The notes under the pieces: generated by a model | What the model was told of the DNA's origin: nothing | Database searches by the model: none | Seen by the model: only the letters and a program-made list of their open reading frames with translations | Position numbers and translations under genes: made by a program | Sequence record: PV231354.1 | Length of the DNA stretch: 64,000 nt | Reading direction: 5' to 3' (one strand) | In this document: piece after piece, positions 16,403-41,317 of the stretch | How the letters are laid out: each line of letters starts with the position of its first letter | Position numbering within the stretch: the first letter of the stretch is position 1

Positions 16403-16440
16403 TCGTGAATCTTGACATCGGCACAAATCCAGGCCATGGT
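16403..16440 (+). promoter_or_regulatory. Lysis cassette promoter (TCGTGAATCTTGACA-17-CATGGT)
   Basis: Exact copy of the repeated motif upstream of the endolysin. Confidence 0.62.
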
Positions 16441-17855: not shown

Positions 17856-18340
17856 TGCCGCCCTGGGCCGCCGCGCCGCTGCGGGTCTGCGGCAACTTCT
17901 TCCGCTGGGTGCGCCTGACGCTGGACAATCTCTGCGATCGTCCGGACCACCTTCAGCGCCTGTCGATCATCGGCTCGGGCATGGCGGCCTTCCCGCTGAT
18001 CCTGCTGATCATCCACATCCTCGTCTATTTCGGGCTGCACGGTCCCGACACGGCCGCCGCCCTGGCGGTCATCCCGATCATCGGCAACATGGGCTATGGG
18101 GCCTTGGCGCTCTACGCGCTGTCCCAGGTGGCGCTCCTGGGGATCATCAAGGGCATCCGGATCGCCGCGCCCGGTGGCGTCAACGTCGCCATCGAGACCA
18201 CGGCGGGCACGGGCGACGGCCTGTCCGACGACAACGACGACCATGACCATGGACACGGCCGCTGGCGCGGCCGGGACCGCGATCAAGGTTGCGAACCCAA
18301 TCCCCCTGCCGGCTCTGGAGCCGGCGCTATCACGGAGTAG
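17852..18340 (+). CDS. Putative holin
   Basis: Two to three hydrophobic segments and a charged C-terminal tail; last membrane gene of the lysis cassette. Confidence 0.55.
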   Translation: MMPPWAAAPLRVCGNFFRWVRLTLDNLCDRPDHLQRLSIIGSGMAAFPLILLIIHILVYFGLHGPDTAAALAVIPIIGNMGYGALALYALSQVALLGIIKGIRIAAPGGVNVAIETTAGTGDGLSDDNDDHDHGHGRWRGRDRDQGCEPNPPAGSGAGAITE

Positions 18341-18345
18341 GGATC

Positions 18346-18492
18346 ATGCGCGAAGGCTATGGCGGTCTGAAGATCATCGACGGGCTGGTCGGCGACATCC
18401 TTCCGATCAAGGATGACATCATCCCGGTCAAGGACGACGTCAGCACCGGCTTCCCGGACGGCGACGCGCTCGCCCCGCTCGACTACGGATAG
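18346..18492 (+). CDS. Small acidic hypothetical protein (48 aa)
   Basis: ATG 5 nt after the holin stop; GC3-rich codon usage. Confidence 0.45.
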   Translation: MREGYGGLKIIDGLVGDILPIKDDIIPVKDDVSTGFPDGDALAPLDYG

Positions 18493-18514
18493 ACCTGCGA
18501 CATCCGGTCGCATG

Positions 18515-18552
18515 TCGTGATCCTTGACATATCGACGTTCTTGCACTATGGT
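18515..18552 (+). promoter_or_regulatory. Sigma70-type promoter (TCGTGATCCTTGACA-17-TATGGT)
   Basis: Variant of the repeated motif with a 17-bp spacer; no credible ORF downstream before the terminator. Confidence 0.65.
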
Positions 18553-18553
18553 C

Positions 18554-18819
18554 GCGCTTCTTCGACGGCATCCCACCGTCCCACATGGCTCGCGACCCAC
18601 CGTTCGCAGGGACACGATCGCGACCAAGGCGGTAGCCGGAACGATGCTAGACCGCAAGGTCAAGCCTCCGGAACACGCAGCAGCCGGCTGGAACGCTAGG
18701 CTCCTACGTCCAAACGGGGTAGAGGCTTCCTGAGCCTTCGGGCGAGAGACCCCACCACCTCGAAAGAGGTTCACGCGTGATGCGGAGAAGGGCTGAAAAG
18801 CCCAAGTGTCTGGAAGTGC
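18554..18819 (+). ncRNA. Putative structured non-coding RNA (~265 nt), family unknown
   Basis: Lies between a promoter and an intrinsic terminator; hairpins capped by GCAA, UUCG and two GAAA tetraloops. Confidence 0.6.
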
Positions 18820-18820
18820 A

Positions 18821-18858
18821 GAAGACCCCGCCGGAGCAATCCGGCGGGGTCTTTTTCT
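18821..18858 (+). terminator. Intrinsic terminator
   Basis: AAGACCCCGCCGGA-GCAA-TCCGGCGGGGTCTT plus a T tract. Confidence 0.85.
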
Positions 18859-18879
18859 GTCTGGAGCGGAGGAGCCCGA

Positions 18880-19671
18880 CTAGGCGCGCGCGCGGGCCTT
18901 GGAGGCGACCGGCATCGCCGGCGCCAGGGCGCCCACCTTGCCGACCACCTTGCCCAGGATCACGATCTTGCTGGCCTCGACGTCGATGTGGTCCTTCAGG
19001 TCCGCGTCGTAGATGCGATAGGGGCCGGTCTTGCTCGGGCGCGTGACGTGCGCCACCTGCATGGTCTTGTTGAGCCCGTAGACGAACTCGCCGCCGGCCG
19101 CGTTGGGCTCGACCTCGCGGCGGACCACCGCCATGTCACCCGGATTGAGGCCGGGGGCGAAGTCGTGGATCGCCGCCAGGGCCAGATCGGTGGGCTCGGC
19201 TTCGAAGCGCTCGCGCAGCCAGTCCGGATCGAGGTTCCAGGTCCGCAGGCGCTGGAACTCGCCGGTGCGCGGCTTGAAGGTCAGTTCCTCGACCGGGTTG
19301 GGCGAGCCGACCCCGAAGGTGATGTACTCGGGGGTGGTCTTCAAGACGTGAGCGATCTGCTCCAGCACATCGATGTGTGGCTTGACGCTGTCGGACTCGT
19401 ACATGATGTAGGCGGTGCGCGCCAGGGGCCGACGCTCGCCAGCCTGCTTCGGCTCCCAGCCGGGTTTGGTGCTGACGTCCTTGCGCGAATTGCTCTGCTG
19501 GGTCAGGTAGACCCGCGACGCGACTTGTTCCTGGGTCAGGCCCAGGCCCATGCGGCAGGCGGTAATGCGCTGGCCGATGGTGCGAGGATGCGCGAGATCG
19601 GCATCCTTGTGGATCAGGGAACGAGACCGGTGCGCAGCAACGCCCGGCTTCATCTCGATCACGGTTTGCAT
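18880..19671 (-). CDS. XRE-family HTH transcriptional regulator with an S24-like C-terminal domain (repressor-like)
   Basis: IGQRITACRMGLGLTQEQVA...YESDSVKP..LEQIAHVLKTTPEYITFG HTH; C-terminal GDMAVV...ILGKVVG. Confidence 0.75.
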   Translation of the reverse strand: MQTVIEMKPGVAAHRSRSLIHKDADLAHPRTIGQRITACRMGLGLTQEQVASRVYLTQQSNSRKDVSTKPGWEPKQAGERRPLARTAYIMYESDSVKPHIDVLEQIAHVLKTTPEYITFGVGSPNPVEELTFKPRTGEFQRLRTWNLDPDWLRERFEAEPTDLALAAIHDFAPGLNPGDMAVVRREVEPNAAGGEFVYGLNKTMQVAHVTRPSKTGPYRIYDADLKDHIDVEASKIVILGKVVGKVGALAPAMPVASKARARA

Positions 19672-21976: not shown

Positions 21977-24790
21977 CTAGCCCTCGCAGGCCACGCAGGT
22001 GGAGTCGGACGTCGGGTTCAGCGCCAGCAGCGCGGCCTCTTCGGCGGACCCCGTGGTCGGGACCTCCTCGGCGACGTCGATCTGCTTGCGCTCGACCTTG
22101 GTGTTGGTGTTCTCGGCCCGCTTGGGCGTCGTCGACCGCAGGTAGTACATCGACTTGACGCCGTACCCCTCGTTCCAGGCCAGGAAGGTGACTTCCGACA
22201 GCGTCTCGGCCGTGGCGTCGTGCGGGTGGAAGACGTTCAGGGACTGGCCCTGGCAGATGTCCTCCGTCCGCCCGACGGCCAGCCGCACGACCCAGCGCTG
22301 GTCGAGTTCCATCGCCGTCTTGTAGACGCGCTTCTTGTGGTCCAGGACCGCCGGGTCGACTTCGATGCCCAGGGCCTCGAAGAACTCGACCGAGAAGTGC
22401 TGGATCGAGCCCTCGTTGGCGACGATGGTCTTCCAGACCTCATCGGTGTCGGCGCCCAGGCTCGCCAGCCACGCGCGCAGCCAGCGGTTCTTGACCTGGA
22501 ACGAACCCGAGAGGGTCTTGTGCAGGAAGGTGTTGGCGCGGTTGGGCTCGATCGACGGCGAAGCGCCGCCGCAGAGGATCGACGAGGAGGCGTTGGGGGC
22601 CACCGCCAGCTTGTGGGCGAAGCGCTCGCCCGAGCCTTCCATGTCCGGAGCTTCGCCGCGCTCGGCGCCCAGGACCAGCGACGCCGCGTCGGCCTTGCGG
22701 CGCATGTGGCGGAAGATGGTCTTATTGAGCGTCTCGGCCGCCATGCTCTCGAACGGGATGTCGAGCGACTGGAGCAGCGAGTGGAAGCCCAGCAGGCCCA
22801 GGCCCACCGAGCGCTCGCGCACGGCGCTGTAGGAGGCCCGGTGCATCTCGTCCGGCGCGTTGTCGATGAACACCTGGAGGCAGTTGTCCAGCATGCGCAT
22901 CAGGTCTTCGATGAAGGTCGGGTGATCCTTCCACTCGACCCACTTCTCGGCGTTGACGCTCGACAGGCAGCAGACGGCCGTGCGCATCTTGCCGAACACG
23001 TCGCGGCCGGTGCCCAGCATGATCTCCGAGCAGTTGCCCGTCAGGTAGCCGTTGAAGACCAGCCGGTTCCGCTTGGGCTCGGTGGCGCAGAAGACGTCAG
23101 CCTTGTGGGCGAGCGGATGCACGCTGGCGACCGTGGCGGCCAGCTTGGGCGCGACCTCGATCTGGTGGGCCGCGTCGATCTGCTCGGCGGTCTTGGACAG
23201 CACCGCGCCGACCTTCGACAGGTACGCCACGTCCCAGGCCGACAGCGAGAAGGCGCTGACCGTGTCGGTCAGGCGGATGCGCGGATGCAGGCCCGTCTCG
23301 ACGGCCATCAGGCGCATCTCGCGGATCAGGTCCGCGTCGGTCGAGCCGACCGTCAGCCAGCGCACGCCGTCGATCTCGACCCATTCGCCAGCCGCGTCCA
23401 GCGCCCCGCCCAGCCACGCCAGACGGCGGCTCGGGGTGTGATGGAACGGCACGACGCCGGTGGCCAGCGTCAGGGGGTCATAGCGCAGGGTGGTGCCCGC
23501 CTCGTCGCCTTCCAGGTTCAGCGACAGCGCCGACAGGGTCTTGAGCACCGCGTCGGGCAGGCCCGCCGGCACGAAGGCCGACAGACGGTTCTTGTCGCTG
23601 AAGCCAGCGAAGGTCGTCCAGCCGGCCGTGTAGGCGACTTCCAGCGGTGGGCTGGCGTCGCTGACGCCCTCGGTGATCGGCACGTTGGCCTTGGCCAGCA
23701 CCGTGCCGTCCTTCAGTTCGCCGGCGCGGACCTCGACGCCCGCCTCGGTGTAGAACTTGTGGTAGGGAGTGCAGTCGATGAAGTCGCCGTCCTCGAACCA
23801 GACGCGGACCAGTTCGGCCTTCTCGTCGGTGGCGTTGGTCTGGTGGATCAGGACGTTGCTGAACTCGACGCCGTTCCAGACGTCATGGAAGCCGCCGGCC
23901 AGCGAGGCGATCGGCAGGTGACCGTTGCGGGTCAGGATTTCGGTCTCGCCCGCCACGCAGAGGTTCGACTGGCGAACGCTCAGGCCAAGCTTCTTCTGCC
24001 GGTCCGGGAAGTGGCGGTTGGAGGTGTCGATGAAGTGGATGTAGGGCTCGCCCGTCTGCACGCGCGTCTCGATCAGCAGGCGCCACAGGTCGCGCGCCCG
24101 CTCCATGCGGATCACCTCGCCCGTCTTGGGCGAGCGCAGGGCGAAGTCGGTGTCGTCGCGCACCGCGATCATGAACTCGTCGGTGACGTTGACCGCGTTG
24201 TGCAGGTTGGTGATCTTGCGGTTGTGGTCCCCGCCCGTCGGCTTGCGCGCGGTGATGAACTCGCGGATTTCCGGGTGGTGGATGTCCAGGTAGACGGCGT
24301 TGGAGCCCCGACGCGTGCCGCCCTGGCTGACGGCCAGGATCAGGCGGTCGTCCACGGCCATGAACGGGATGACGCCGGTCGACTGCGAACCCTTGGAGGT
24401 CTTCTCGCCCAGGCCGCGCAGGGCGCCGTAATAGGAGCCGATGCCGCCGCCCATCGACGACAGCCAGATGACCTCGTCATAGTGCTCGGAGATCGACTCG
24501 CGGCTGTCCTCGATCGCGGTGAGGAAGCAGGAGATCGGCAGGCCACGGGCCGAGCCGCCGTTCGACAGCAGCGGGGTGGCGTACATGAACCAGAGGTTCG
24601 AGACGTAGTCGTACAGACGCTGGCCGTGCTCGGCGTCATCCGCAAAGGCCGCACTCGCGCGCGCGAAGGCCTCCTGGGGGGACGTTTCCCCAGGCAGCAG
24701 ATAGCGTTCACGGAGGGTCTGAAGGGTGAAGTCGTCGAGCAGGGCGTCGCGGGTGAGATCGATCTTGATTTCGTGCGTTGCGACAGCCAT
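21977..24790 (-). CDS. nrdA: Ribonucleotide reductase class I alpha subunit, intein-containing
   Basis: ATPLLSN, PISCF, SQGGTRRG, TGEPY, SNL|intein|CSEI, APNASSS, ICQGQSLN, KSMYYLR, C-terminal CVACEG; start at ATG 24790. Confidence 0.95.
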   Translation of the reverse strand: MAVATHEIKIDLTRDALLDDFTLQTLRERYLLPGETSPQEAFARASAAFADDAEHGQRLYDYVSNLWFMYATPLLSNGGSARGLPISCFLTAIEDSRESISEHYDEVIWLSSMGGGIGSYYGALRGLGEKTSKGSQSTGVIPFMAVDDRLILAVSQGGTRRGSNAVYLDIHHPEIREFITARKPTGGDHNRKITNLHNAVNVTDEFMIAVRDDTDFALRSPKTGEVIRMERARDLWRLLIETRVQTGEPYIHFIDTSNRHFPDRQKKLGLSVRQSNLCVAGETEILTRNGHLPIASLAGGFHDVWNGVEFSNVLIHQTNATDEKAELVRVWFEDGDFIDCTPYHKFYTEAGVEVRAGELKDGTVLAKANVPITEGVSDASPPLEVAYTAGWTTFAGFSDKNRLSAFVPAGLPDAVLKTLSALSLNLEGDEAGTTLRYDPLTLATGVVPFHHTPSRRLAWLGGALDAAGEWVEIDGVRWLTVGSTDADLIREMRLMAVETGLHPRIRLTDTVSAFSLSAWDVAYLSKVGAVLSKTAEQIDAAHQIEVAPKLAATVASVHPLAHKADVFCATEPKRNRLVFNGYLTGNCSEIMLGTGRDVFGKMRTAVCCLSSVNAEKWVEWKDHPTFIEDLMRMLDNCLQVFIDNAPDEMHRASYSAVRERSVGLGLLGFHSLLQSLDIPFESMAAETLNKTIFRHMRRKADAASLVLGAERGEAPDMEGSGERFAHKLAVAPNASSSILCGGASPSIEPNRANTFLHKTLSGSFQVKNRWLRAWLASLGADTDEVWKTIVANEGSIQHFSVEFFEALGIEVDPAVLDHKKRVYKTAMELDQRWVVRLAVGRTEDICQGQSLNVFHPHDATAETLSEVTFLAWNEGYGVKSMYYLRSTTPKRAENTNTKVERKQIDVAEEVPTTGSAEEAALLALNPTSDSTCVACEG
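23033..23959 (-). mobile_element. Intein (309 aa) in NrdA with LAGLIDADG-like endonuclease remnants
   Basis: Begins CVAGETEILTRNG, ends NRLVFNGYLTGN before extein Cys; internal AYTAGW and RLAWLGGALDAAG blocks; excision restores SNLCSE. Confidence 0.9.
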
Positions 24791-24866
24791 GGGGTCTCGT
24801 TCTCGCGACAAGGCGCGATGCGTTAAAAAGCCCTGAGAAATCAGGGCCTTAAGATGAAAGCAAAGG

Positions 24867-24910
24867 ATGGTTAAGATAGCCTGAGGGGTCCCGAAAGTCA
24901 AGATTCACGA
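24867..24910 (-). promoter_or_regulatory. nrdA promoter (TCGTGAATCTTGACT-17-TATCTT) with an overlapping TTAACCAT
   Basis: Reverse-strand copy of the repeated motif at 24897-24910. Confidence 0.65.
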
Positions 24911-32024: not shown

Positions 32025-32096
32025 CGGGGCGATCTCGTTCGGGAGTGTCTTGTTAACCAAGTTCCGGATGGGTGTCAAGATTCACGACATCGAAAG

Positions 32097-40036: not shown

Positions 40037-40125
40037 TGGAGCTACGGGAGGGACTCGAACCCTCATAGGTGTCGCCACCAGCAGAGATTTGCAATCCCGC
40101 GCCTAACCTCTCGGACCACCGTAGC
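40037..40125 (-). tRNA. tRNA-Cys(GCA) with a long variable arm
   Basis: GCTACGG/CCGTAGC acceptor stem, U73-CCA encoded, loop TTGCAAA, T arm GAGGG-TTCGAGT-CCCTC, variable hairpin GGTG-GCGA-CACC. Confidence 0.85.
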
Positions 40126-40311: not shown

Positions 40312-40402
40312 CTTATAGCCGAGCCTTCACGCGTCCGCAACGAAAAATGTGTCGTGAGTGATGACTTTTTCCTTGACACCTTCGATTAGGCTCTGGTAGA
40401 GA
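40312..40402. promoter_or_regulatory. Divergent promoters: leftward TTGCGG-17-TATAAG and rightward TTGACA-18-TAGAGA
   Basis: Hexamers at 40335-40340/40312-40317 (minus) and 40373-40378/40397-40402 (plus). Confidence 0.55.
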
Positions 40403-40404
40403 AC

Positions 40405-40760
40405 AGGCATCGTTGTAATTCGGACAACGGAAACGGCGGCAAGACAGGGGTGCGATTCCCCTCGCCTCCACCATGAGCATCCGGCGCTGGGAGTACGCGA
40501 CTCCTGGGCAGGGAGTGTTACCCTGGCGGGCTGCGGCCCGAGCCAAAGGTAGCCGGGTGCTCATGACGGGGGCGATCAGCTTCGATTGGCGCATGTGACT
40601 GGAAGACGCAACGGTGGGTGACCTCCAGGCCAGCTTGCTGGTGATCGGGTCGAAGCAACAGAAATGTCGCTGCAAATGACAACGCTCCGTTCGCGGTGCG
40701 TGAAGCCATCGCCGCCTAATAAGCGGTAGAGGCGTGTCCCGGCGGACGCGCGTGTCACAA
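40405..40760 (+). ncRNA. ssrA: Circularly permuted (two-piece) tmRNA; tag ANDNAPFAVREAIAA
   Basis: Acceptor piece ends AGGGG-TGCGATT-CCCCT-CGCCTCC-A-CCA (40473); coding piece starts GGGGGCG (40568), giving G3.U70; tag ORF 40672-40719 followed by a second TAA; outer ends approximate. Confidence 0.9.
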
Positions 40761-40901: not shown

Positions 40902-40980
40902 CGCGGGGTAGAGGAGTCCGGTTGTCCTCGTCTGGCTCATAACCAGAAGATCAGGGGTTCAAATCCCCTTCCCGCTCCCA
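40902..40980 (+). tRNA. tRNA-Met(CAT), initiator-like
   Basis: CGCGGGG 5' end with C1:U72 mismatch, TCTGG-CTCATAA-CCAGA, AGGGG-TTCAAAT-CCCCT, CCA encoded. Confidence 0.85.
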
Positions 40981-41230: not shown

Positions 41231-41317
41231 GGTACGGTGGCTCGACAGGTAAGGCATCGGCCTCATAAGCCGAGGGACTAGCTCCCGATCCTGGTTCAAA
41301 TCCAGGTCGTACCTCCA
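41231..41317 (+). tRNA. tRNA with CAT anticodon, long variable arm and U73 (Met or Ile2; identity uncertain)
   Basis: GGTACGG/TCGTACC, TCGGC-CTCATAA-GCCGA, variable hairpin GGGA-CTAGC-TCCC, CCTGG-TTCAAAT-CCAGG, T-CCA. Confidence 0.82.

Follow-up and report, generated by a model that had tools for sequence, protein, structure and literature searches.

A structured RNA gene of phiCbK-like Caulobacter phages and its predicted family across the subfamily Dolichocephalovirinae

Several orphan RNAs with elaborate folds are known from phages, among them GOLLD, ROOL and raiA and the 'species 1/2' RNAs of phage T4, which are often encoded beside transfer RNA (tRNA) genes and are transcribed on their own. 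Ribozymes, riboswitches, protein scaffolds and self-assembling particles have emerged from earlier finds of this general kind, and the Y RNAs (YrlA, Rsr/Ro60) act as protein-bound scaffolds. Here we describe an RNA gene that lies directly after the lysis cassette in a 64,000-nucleotide (nt) stretch of sequence record PV231354.1, referred to here as the window (all coordinates without another label refer to it). An earlier note on this DNA, made from the letters alone, had proposed an undescribed functional phage noncoding RNA at this place, and that reading is supported. It is also considerably extended, by a 5' core that the RNA shares with homologues in a wide range of phages; neither the core nor this distribution had been seen in the note. 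The RNA resembles GOLLD, ROOL and raiA in the tRNA context that is seen for the copy in phage CcrSC, and differs from them in its size range, in its core motif, in having no Rfam match and in having been found so far only in the Dolichocephalovirinae.

The 401 bases around the RNA gene are 100% identical to those of the Caulobacter phages RBC63, RBC8, RBC11 and BL64, 97% identical to those of CcrRogue and 80-82% identical to those of phiCbK, Karma, Swift, Magneto and Ccr phages; because of these identities, we assign the window to a CcrRogue-like, phiCbK-type giant siphophage. The locus is almost certainly a genuine structured RNA gene, having a promoter and a terminator of its own, compensatory changes in its stems and no coding signal. 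The promoter stands where the earlier note had placed it, scores 10 out of 12, and is the sole promoter-like site within 17.5-20.5 kb; the pattern TTGACA-N16-18-TANNNT to which it conforms occurs once in the 64 kb, against 0.12 occurrences expected by chance. The plus strand folds at -143 kcal/mol (z = -4.4 versus dinucleotide shuffles), and it is taken as the RNA strand because of the promoter, the U tail and the many G-U pairs, whose counterparts on the opposite strand would be A-C.

Covariation was examined in an alignment of 10 distinct phiCbK-like phages, on the RNAalifold consensus structure. Across these phages 99.2% of the cells are paired, and 7 pairs are changed on both sides, versus 0-1 when the partners are slid by 1-3 columns, a comparison in which real pairing is favoured over the slid versions because the tested structure was derived from the same alignment. 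The covariation score was 0.134 versus 0.078, and none of 500 shuffles reached 0.134. Among the 10 phages neither promoter hexamer varies, nor does most of the first 160 nt; the changes, which are compensatory, concentrate in four hairpins and the terminator. All five hairpins that the earlier note had drawn (18564-18580, 18650-18661, 18734-18743, 18757-18770 and 18790-18803) are present at those positions, and the covariation analysis that it had called for bears out the four that are capped by tetraloops, together with the terminator. The tetraloops themselves exchange (GCAA/GUAA/GCGA; UUCG/UCCG/GCAA/GAAA; GAAA/GCAA/GACA; GAAA/GUCA), and since the peripheral ones switch between the UNCG and GNRA types, they serve as caps rather than contacts. 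Between the window phage and phiCbK the 5' domain is 91% identical and the peripheral 3' hairpins are 64% identical with their pairing retained; for the neighbouring genes the values are 84-86% for three out of four and 76% for a small open reading frame (ORF), with 74-83% at third codon positions.

Rfam 15, with its 4227 models, was searched at the gathering score and at E<=10. At the gathering score only a transfer-messenger RNA (tmRNA) and tRNAs pass in the whole window, with nothing at the RNA gene; at E<=10 the interval 18300-19000 yields only noise driven by the terminator, and the homologues in the phages CcrColossus (Colossus) and CcrPW (PW) and in an uncultured phage have no match. 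Literature searches turned up no description of the RNA, which is mentioned neither in the phiCbK genome paper (PMC3556154) nor in a study of phiCbK transcription factors and RNA-seq (PMC10688885). By blastn, no match to the RNA was found in E. coli genomes, and there is therefore no obvious mimicry of universal RNAs. The earlier note's claim that the RNA is undescribed thus holds for Rfam, which it had named as a check, and for the literature searched, and its structure is conserved. The RNA is new as a family, and we claim no new mechanism for it. A conserved RNA of 150-620 nt with a complex fold that is unrelated to any of 4227 Rfam families is an uncommon find. It was present all along in phiCbK, a classic model phage of Caulobacter (NC_019405, about 80,545-80,845, plus strand), and the phiCbK-type gene is unannotated in the records inspected: in all 10 phage records in which the annotation was inspected the stretch is a gap of ~390 bp, within which a predicted terminator is annotated in three (phiCbK, Karma and Swift).

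All full homologues share a 5' core that consists of hairpin A, a linker (AR), helix D enclosing a covarying helix B, and hairpin C (Table 1). Compensatory changes occur in helices A, B and C across at least six lineages. Helix A folds as a hairpin in 10 of 10 lineages and has four pairs that covary between them (UA/CG, GC/CG, CG/GC/UA/UG and GC/GU/UA/UG); in Colossus, PW, Kikimora, Domovoi and Bambus it is also capped by a UGGAA loop. The stem of helix B takes the forms CCGGA/UCCGG, CCGGC/GCCGG, ACCGCGC/GCGCGGU, GGCGC/GCGCC and GGC/GCC in different lineages, and the stems of helix C differ yet remain paired (GCCGGC/GCU-GGC, CCCGAC/GUCGGG, CCGGC/GCCGG, CCCC-GC/GC-GGGG) below a loop that reads UGGAA(C/A/AC) in every lineage. 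Both strands of helix D are identical in all lineages, and for this reason its pairing is deduced from geometry and energy-minimised folds, not from covariation. GCGGU, ACACGC, CCA-AR and the UGGAA loop do not differ between the versions of the RNA, from that of 151 nt to that of 620 nt, while the stems change, so that the constraint sits in the loops, bulge and junctions of a small core whose stems and caps drift. Upstream of the core, Bajun has a different 7-bp hairpin in place of the one at 18564-18580, and an alternative pairing of ACCGUC (18575-18580) with GGCGGU (18628-18633), which is preferred by RNAalifold, is possible. We rejected a long-range helix that RNAalifold draws between UCCGG..CACGC and GCGUG..CGGA (18667-78 with 18775-86): it is invariant in the phiCbK-like phages, yet it is contradicted by an A-C mismatch in Bajun, its 3' partner is missing from the 151-nt version, and hairpin B uses the same CCGG.

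The motif GGAA(A/C), which the loops of helices A and C share, occurs 2-3 times as often in each lineage as in dinucleotide shuffles. The UGGAA(C/A) sequences on the two helices may represent a two-site protein-binding motif.

The 3' domain is specific to lineages in its size, from 0 to ~450 nt, and carries the other three hairpins of the earlier note as well as the block GGUUCACGCGUGAUGCGG. Its first helix shows a compensatory closing pair (CG/UA/UG), an inner pair that varies as GC/CG, and a loop that switches between UNCG and GNRA; the hairpin at 18757-18770 is shortened to ACCC-GACAA-GGGU in Shapirovirus and in BL57. Within the conserved block, GAUGCGG is kept in all large versions checked (Bajun, Colossus/PW and Kikimora), and Kikimora also keeps GAGGUUCAC, its two blocks lying ~55 nt apart; both blocks are absent from the 151-nt version. 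The terminator that the earlier note had seen after the hairpins is there, with a T run and a covarying stem of at least 12 G+C-rich pairs, for which no conserved alternative pairing was found in the sequence or in the 10-phage alignment. A simple terminator scan missed this stem, possibly because it can extend into the T run. A run of A residues precedes the stem, as in two-way terminators, and the terminator is probably common to the RNA gene and the convergent helix-turn-helix (HTH) gene, which ends at 18880. A helix that had been suggested to close the whole RNA (18554-60 with 18813-19) did not survive comparison: it pairs in the window phage, but 6 of the 10 phages have mismatches in two of its seven pairs, and individual phages lose others; its 3' strand lies in a stretch (18804-18821) of 33-44% identity, and its 5' strand, which starts 2 nt downstream of the -10 hexamer, is therefore probably upstream of the transcription start.

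Table 1. Features of the RNA gene and its immediate surroundings in the window
Feature	Position	Strand	Remarks
Small ORF after the holin gene	18346-18492	+	Left flank of the unannotated gap
Promoter upstream element: palindrome GCGAC-N5-GTCGC (18497-18511), then box ATGTCGTGATCC	18496-18523	+	Invariant or nearly so in 10 phages
Sigma-70-type promoter TTGACA-17-TATGGT	18524-18552	+	Both hexamers invariant in 10 of 10 phages
RNA gene, ~300 nt	18558-18858	+	5' end placed from the -10 position; 3' end is the T run of the terminator
Hairpin GACGG-CAUCCCA-CCGUC	18564-18580	+	Invariant in phiCbK-like phages
Helix A: base UGG/CCA, stem UCGCGA/UCGCGA, conserved apical loop ACCGUUCGCAGG	18586-18626	+	
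Helix D: GCGGU (18629-33) with AC(A)CGC (18673-78), bulged A	18629-18678	+	Encloses helix B
Helix B: CCGGA/UCCGG	18636-40 with 18667-71	+	Inside helix D; GNRA hairpin in its loop
Inserted GNRA hairpin (GCAA hairpin of the earlier note, 18650-18661)	18646-18665	+	Covaries UA/CG and GC/GU/AU; loop always GNRA
Helix C with conserved hexaloop UGGAAC (18689-18694)	18682-18702	+	
Helix GGGGU/ACCCC enclosing hairpin GCC-UUCG-GGC (18734-18743)	18716-18753	+	
Hairpin ACCUC-GAAA-GAGGU	18757-18770	+	Poindextervirus group
Conserved block GGUUCACGCGUGAUGCGG	18768-18785	+	Invariant in 10 phages; one change in Bajun
Hairpin GGGCU-GAAA-AGCCC	18790-18803	+	Three covarying pairs; loop GAAA or GUCA
Linker, including the 3' strand of the proposed closing helix	18804-18819	+	Poorly conserved
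Intrinsic terminator, stem GACCCCGCCGGA/UCCGGCGGGGUC and U5 (stem 18824-18851)	18820-18858	+	Compensatory stem changes
XRE-type HTH gene, convergent	18880-19671	-	Pfam HTH_3; right flank of the unannotated gap
Overlapping ORFs of 60-69 amino acids	18517-18699, 18524-18733	+	Open in the window phage
ORF of 163 amino acids	18283-18774	-	Open in the window phage

Brevundimonas phage Bajun, CcrColossus and CcrPW, seven large Brevundimonas phages and an uncultured phage of 279 kb have homologues, which measure 151-620 nt. A covariance model (R1, default filters) finds only the phiCbK-like copies, with no paralogue in the window, and misses Bajun, whose 404-nt homologue in the same place and orientation was detected by nhmmer (E = 4e-8). 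Synteny with the HTH gene led to the uncultured phage, IMGVR_UViG_3300001199_000001, which has a copy of 151 nt comprising a TTGACA-16-TATGGT promoter, the 5' part of the RNA only, and a terminator. A signature derived from the Bajun, 151-nt and phiCbK-like versions (CCAA-N-GCGGTA...ACACGC...CTGGAA) matches, in IMG/VR, only the known phiCbK-like genomes, the uncultured phage, CcrColossus and CcrPW. The copies in the latter two are ~404 nt long and lie after the lysis genes, tail to tail with an Rsr/TROVE gene. By blastn from the Colossus and Kikimora copies we recognized the versions of the seven large Brevundimonas phages, two of which were measured at 591 and 620 nt; the RNA follows the lysis cassette in 3 of 3 of these phages whose flanks were inspected, and Kikimora, Domovoi and Bambus have promoters of the form TTGACA-16/17-TATAAT or TATAGT. 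In the Bertelyvirus members CcrSC and CcrBL9 the match is limited to a 3' module, and their RNA is probably a relative, if only a partial one. The CcrSC version, a structured RNA of ~400 nt which has this module in common with the copies of the Brevundimonas phages, is situated within an array of tRNA genes directly after tRNA-Asp (L431 1296-1695), with a new promoter beyond it, and is probably released by tRNA processing.

The RNA family, as predicted by these comparisons, is conserved across the subfamily Dolichocephalovirinae, and almost all lineages examined contain relatives. When genome and metagenome collections were scanned for exact patterns, the matches listed (at least 120 in each scan) were, as judged by nhmmer, only chance matches to the seed; absence of the RNA outside phages is not established, because only those listed matches were assessed. 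Several further patterns in IMG/VR returned known phages or chance matches only. The existence of full homologues with near-consensus promoters from Shapirovirus to the large Brevundimonas phages suggests that the product is important and probably abundant, and the natural 151-nt version represents a minimal core that should be tractable for biochemical and structural work. In most lineages the gene has stayed immediately after the lysis cassette; no lysis neighbourhood was seen beside the copies of the uncultured phage and CcrSC. The convergent arrangement with the HTH gene is kept in the phiCbK-like phages, Bajun and the uncultured phage; to call the HTH protein a repressor would be an assumption. 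In the uncultured phage the sole identifiable neighbour is a gene of the CCA-adding type, beyond which lie small ORFs without a Pfam match; this gene belongs to the CCA-adding/poly(A) polymerase family (PF01743, 3e-30; L307 3880-5094, plus strand) and is divergent from the 151-nt RNA.

Among known RNA classes the Y RNAs invite comparison, since they too are stable structured RNAs encoded by large phages, and the protein-bound scaffold is the mode of action that we propose below for the new RNA. The Colossus/PW copy stands tail to tail with the Rsr gene and beside YrlA-like RNAs. Y RNAs carry the Ro-binding motif GNCGAAN0-1G near their 5' end (PMC4201824). No YrlA match was found on either strand at E<=10, and this motif does not occur in 18554-18860. 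Y RNAs are encoded on the same strand as Rsr and within about 4 kb of it, and the new RNA in Colossus is opposite to Rsr; tblastn with the Colossus Rsr protein detected only Colossus and PW among the Caulobacter phages, the phiCbK-like phages being without Rsr. The permuted tmRNA, a type known from alphaproteobacteria and their phages, also phage-encoded and of similar size, has a CTTGACA-type promoter in the same genome (40411-40719), and in CcrSC a tmRNA is located next to the HTH gene, at the site which the new RNA occupies in phiCbK-like phages. The new RNA has no Rfam or ARAGORN match as a tmRNA and no tRNA-like domain, and a GCA GCA GCC frame that might resemble a tag has no stop kept between clades.

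Other classes were set aside more readily. Neither ARAGORN nor the Rfam tRNA model recognizes a cloverleaf, and the only match to 6S RNA is the terminator hairpin (E = 7.3) in an otherwise multi-hairpin fold, whereas 6S RNA is one long irregular helix around a large central bubble. Like the CsrB/RsmZ sponges, the RNA repeats a purine motif in its hairpin loops, UGGAA(C/A), which is present on both helix A and helix C in a number of lineages; GGA occurs 7 times versus 7.5 in shuffles, and not beyond chance in the predicted loops of seven lineages. No CsrA is known in Caulobacter. A riboswitch or cis-regulatory leader is contradicted by the convergent next gene and by the lack of a co-oriented downstream gene and of an expression platform. 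As for the RNA of a type III toxin-antitoxin system, the sequence and the alignments were inspected by eye only, with no repeat-finding tool, and show no tandem repeat; no adjacent toxin gene is annotated. Resemblances noticed by eye to the P4 region of RNase P (UAGCCGG/CCGGCUG), to a T-box-like UGG, to an acceptor-like GGGGU...ACCCC-ACCA and to a tmRNA-like tag frame were dropped as unconserved or unsupported. Phage small RNAs of the Hfq type, like the new RNA, have their own promoter and end in a rho-independent terminator with a U tail, but the new RNA is 3-6 times larger and has a conserved multi-helix core, and no target complementarity above chance was found for it in the window.

We tentatively favour, at somewhat less than an even chance, the reading that the gene specifies an abundant trans-acting RNA that works by its fold and binds a protein. 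In this scenario, host RNA polymerase with the housekeeping sigma factor would transcribe the RNA from its near-consensus promoter with the phage-specific box upstream, and a strong intrinsic terminator would end the transcript. The RNA would fold into hairpin A, helix D with its variable helix B, hairpin C and then a 3' domain of covarying tetraloop hairpins, and would act in trans through this fold: a protein of the host or the phage would bind to the invariant loops, bulge and junctions, and in RNA metabolism or translation the RNA would serve as a scaffold or decoy. Since the promoters are near consensus, transcription by the host polymerase would be expected to be strong. A cis-regulatory role is disfavoured because no co-oriented gene lies downstream, and antisense pairing is probably not the mode of action: 18 complementary 11-mers occur in the 64 kb, versus 17.3 in shuffles. 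The protein decoy that the earlier note had put forward is a candidate role that fits the pattern of conservation. The RNA is also found in the company of other stable RNAs and their attendants, namely the tRNA array of CcrSC, the Rsr/Y-RNA module of Colossus, the tmRNA, and the gene for a CCA-adding-type enzyme in the uncultured phage.

Several points weigh against this reading. Expression of the RNA, the start of its transcript, its action in trans and its binding of a protein are deduced. The invariant single-stranded segments would equally suit a base-pairing seed, a ligand pocket or a catalytic core; the enrichment of GGAA(A/C), 2-3 times in each lineage, is not significant on its own; the search for complementarity was confined to the 64-kb window; and the position after the lysis cassette fits a link with late functions or an inherited gene order alike.

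Of the alternatives, the one that survives best, although we regard it as rather unlikely, is a base-pairing regulatory RNA, possibly dependent on Hfq, that targets host or phage mRNAs, including the version in which it would regulate the timing of lysis. The stand-alone promoter and the U-tailed terminator, before which lies a purine-rich single-stranded linker like that of many small RNAs that bind Hfq, would suit such a role, the invariant unpaired segments might be seeds, and the gene directly follows the lysis cassette in the phiCbK-like phages, Bajun, Colossus and the large Brevundimonas phages. However, no complementarity above chance exists in the 64 kb, lysis genes included, the RNA is far larger and more elaborate than typical small RNAs of the seed type, and its conservation spans helices, bulges and junctions rather than one short seed. 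The lysis-timing role that the earlier note had suggested is not supported by any evidence, and suffers in addition from the lack of a lysis neighbourhood beside the uncultured-phage and CcrSC copies, its position after the lysis cassette thus not being universal. In a more speculative vein, which we would also not expect to be borne out, the RNA might be a new class of ornate RNA that marks the whole phage subfamily, its invariant core of ~90 nt being a catalytic module or one that captures a ligand or protein (for example, a sponge used in host takeover, or a ribozyme) and the 0-450 nt of decoration tuning or multimerising it.

It is less probable still that the RNA is a ligand-binding or catalytic molecule, such as a ribozyme or a free-standing aptamer that soaks up, for example, a signalling nucleotide. 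Its invariant junctions, bulged A and loops are held in place by covarying helices, as in riboswitch aptamers and ribozymes, and the 151-nt version is evidence that the core is enough by itself; against this, no riboswitch or ribozyme in Rfam matches at E<=10, an expression platform and a downstream gene are missing, and we found no candidate ligand or cleavage site.

Two further alternatives appear very improbable. One is a self-assembling particle made only of RNA, in the manner of ROOL, GOLLD and raiA, which in phages often sit near tRNA genes and which multimerise. The modular, ornate architecture, the size of 151-620 nt and the tRNA array around the CcrSC copy are compatible with this idea, as are the self-complementary blocks CACGCGUG in the window phage and CGCGCG in Bajun, but palindromes are common in G+C-rich DNA, Rfam detects no similarity to the three RNAs, and multimerisation would here be a supposition. 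The other, to which we give similarly small credence, is an element acting in cis, either as the structured 3' end of the late/lysis transcript, which it would stabilise or insulate, or as an antisense or terminator device for the convergent HTH gene. The RNA is indeed located where two convergent modules meet, its terminator probably serves both strands, and the pairing with a convergent HTH gene recurs in the phiCbK-like phages, Bajun and the uncultured phage. However, the RNA has its own near-consensus promoter in every lineage, it would overlap the HTH transcript only in the terminator hairpin, it lies ~3 kb from the HTH gene in Colossus, with Rsr and Y RNAs between, and an invariant core would be needless for a mere stabiliser.

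That the stretch encodes one of the 60-69 amino acid ORFs or the 163-amino acid ORF of the minus strand can be practically dismissed: the frames are open in the window phage, but the variable positions show no three-base periodicity (28/28/22), single-base insertions or deletions occur at four columns, BL57 breaks all frames (longest 56 amino acids), both plus-strand ORFs begin within the promoter, and the stem substitutions are compensatory, so that the earlier note was right to see no gene-like ORF here.

The promoter of the RNA gene belongs to a wider set. The homologues have promoters with TTGACA, a spacing of 16/17, and TATGGT, TATAAT, TATAGT or CATAAT, and a palindrome directly upstream of the -35 hexamer is found in Bajun, Colossus and the uncultured phage as well. 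The box of the RNA promoter is that of a phage promoter family, of the form (A)TGTCGTGA(A)TC followed by CTTGACA, with at least nine sites in the window. As the earlier note had recognized, the RNA promoter is a variant of the one used by the lysis genes: the form ATGTCGTGA(A)TC-CTTGACA stands at 16411, before the endolysin gene, and in at least seven other places. The box (A)TGTCGTGAATC adjoins CTTGACA on the plus strand at 16411 (endolysin), 10581, 41471 and 56525 and on the minus strand at 32079, 39300 and 47715, and a looser form of the box precedes the tmRNA gene at 40372. At family sites of the form (A)TGTCGTGAATC-TTGACA, the -35 hexamer directly adjoins a GANTC (CcrM) methylation site, and a regulator of phage or host origin, such as GcrA, may act on promoters of this GANTC-bearing family. 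The box of the RNA gene lacks the methylation site because GATCC replaces GAATC.

Other observations concern the window and its relatives more generally. Between ~28.8 and 41 kb, the coordinates of the window are shifted by +5 to +8 relative to the RBC63 record, although the RNA region is identical, and the window is therefore not RBC63 base for base. The ribonucleotide reductase alpha subunit gene (21977-24901, minus strand) is annotated as intein-containing in the matching records. The tmRNA gene mentioned above is of the permuted (two-piece) type (40411-40719, plus strand; RF04321, 89.8 bits), with its promoter CTTGACA at 40372; it was missed by ARAGORN and is unannotated in the RBC63 record, and it is flanked by genes for tRNA-Cys (40037-40125, minus strand) and two tRNA-Met (40902-40980 and 41231-41317).

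In Colossusvirus and the large Brevundimonas phages, 2-4 YrlA-like Y RNAs (30-42 bits, below the Rfam gathering score) are found upstream of Rsr/TROVE (L017 4015-4626 in CcrColossus; also L016, L018 and L295). Some annotated 'tRNA-Gln' or 'tRNA-Ser' genes beside or overlapping such matches may be the tRNA-like domains of Y RNAs. Downstream of Rsr (minus strand) the large Brevundimonas phages have 560-810 nt that are unannotated and apparently non-coding (L295 7079-7891, L015 6080-6666, L018 6080-6642); these stretches do not carry the signature of the new RNA family and may hold other RNA genes.

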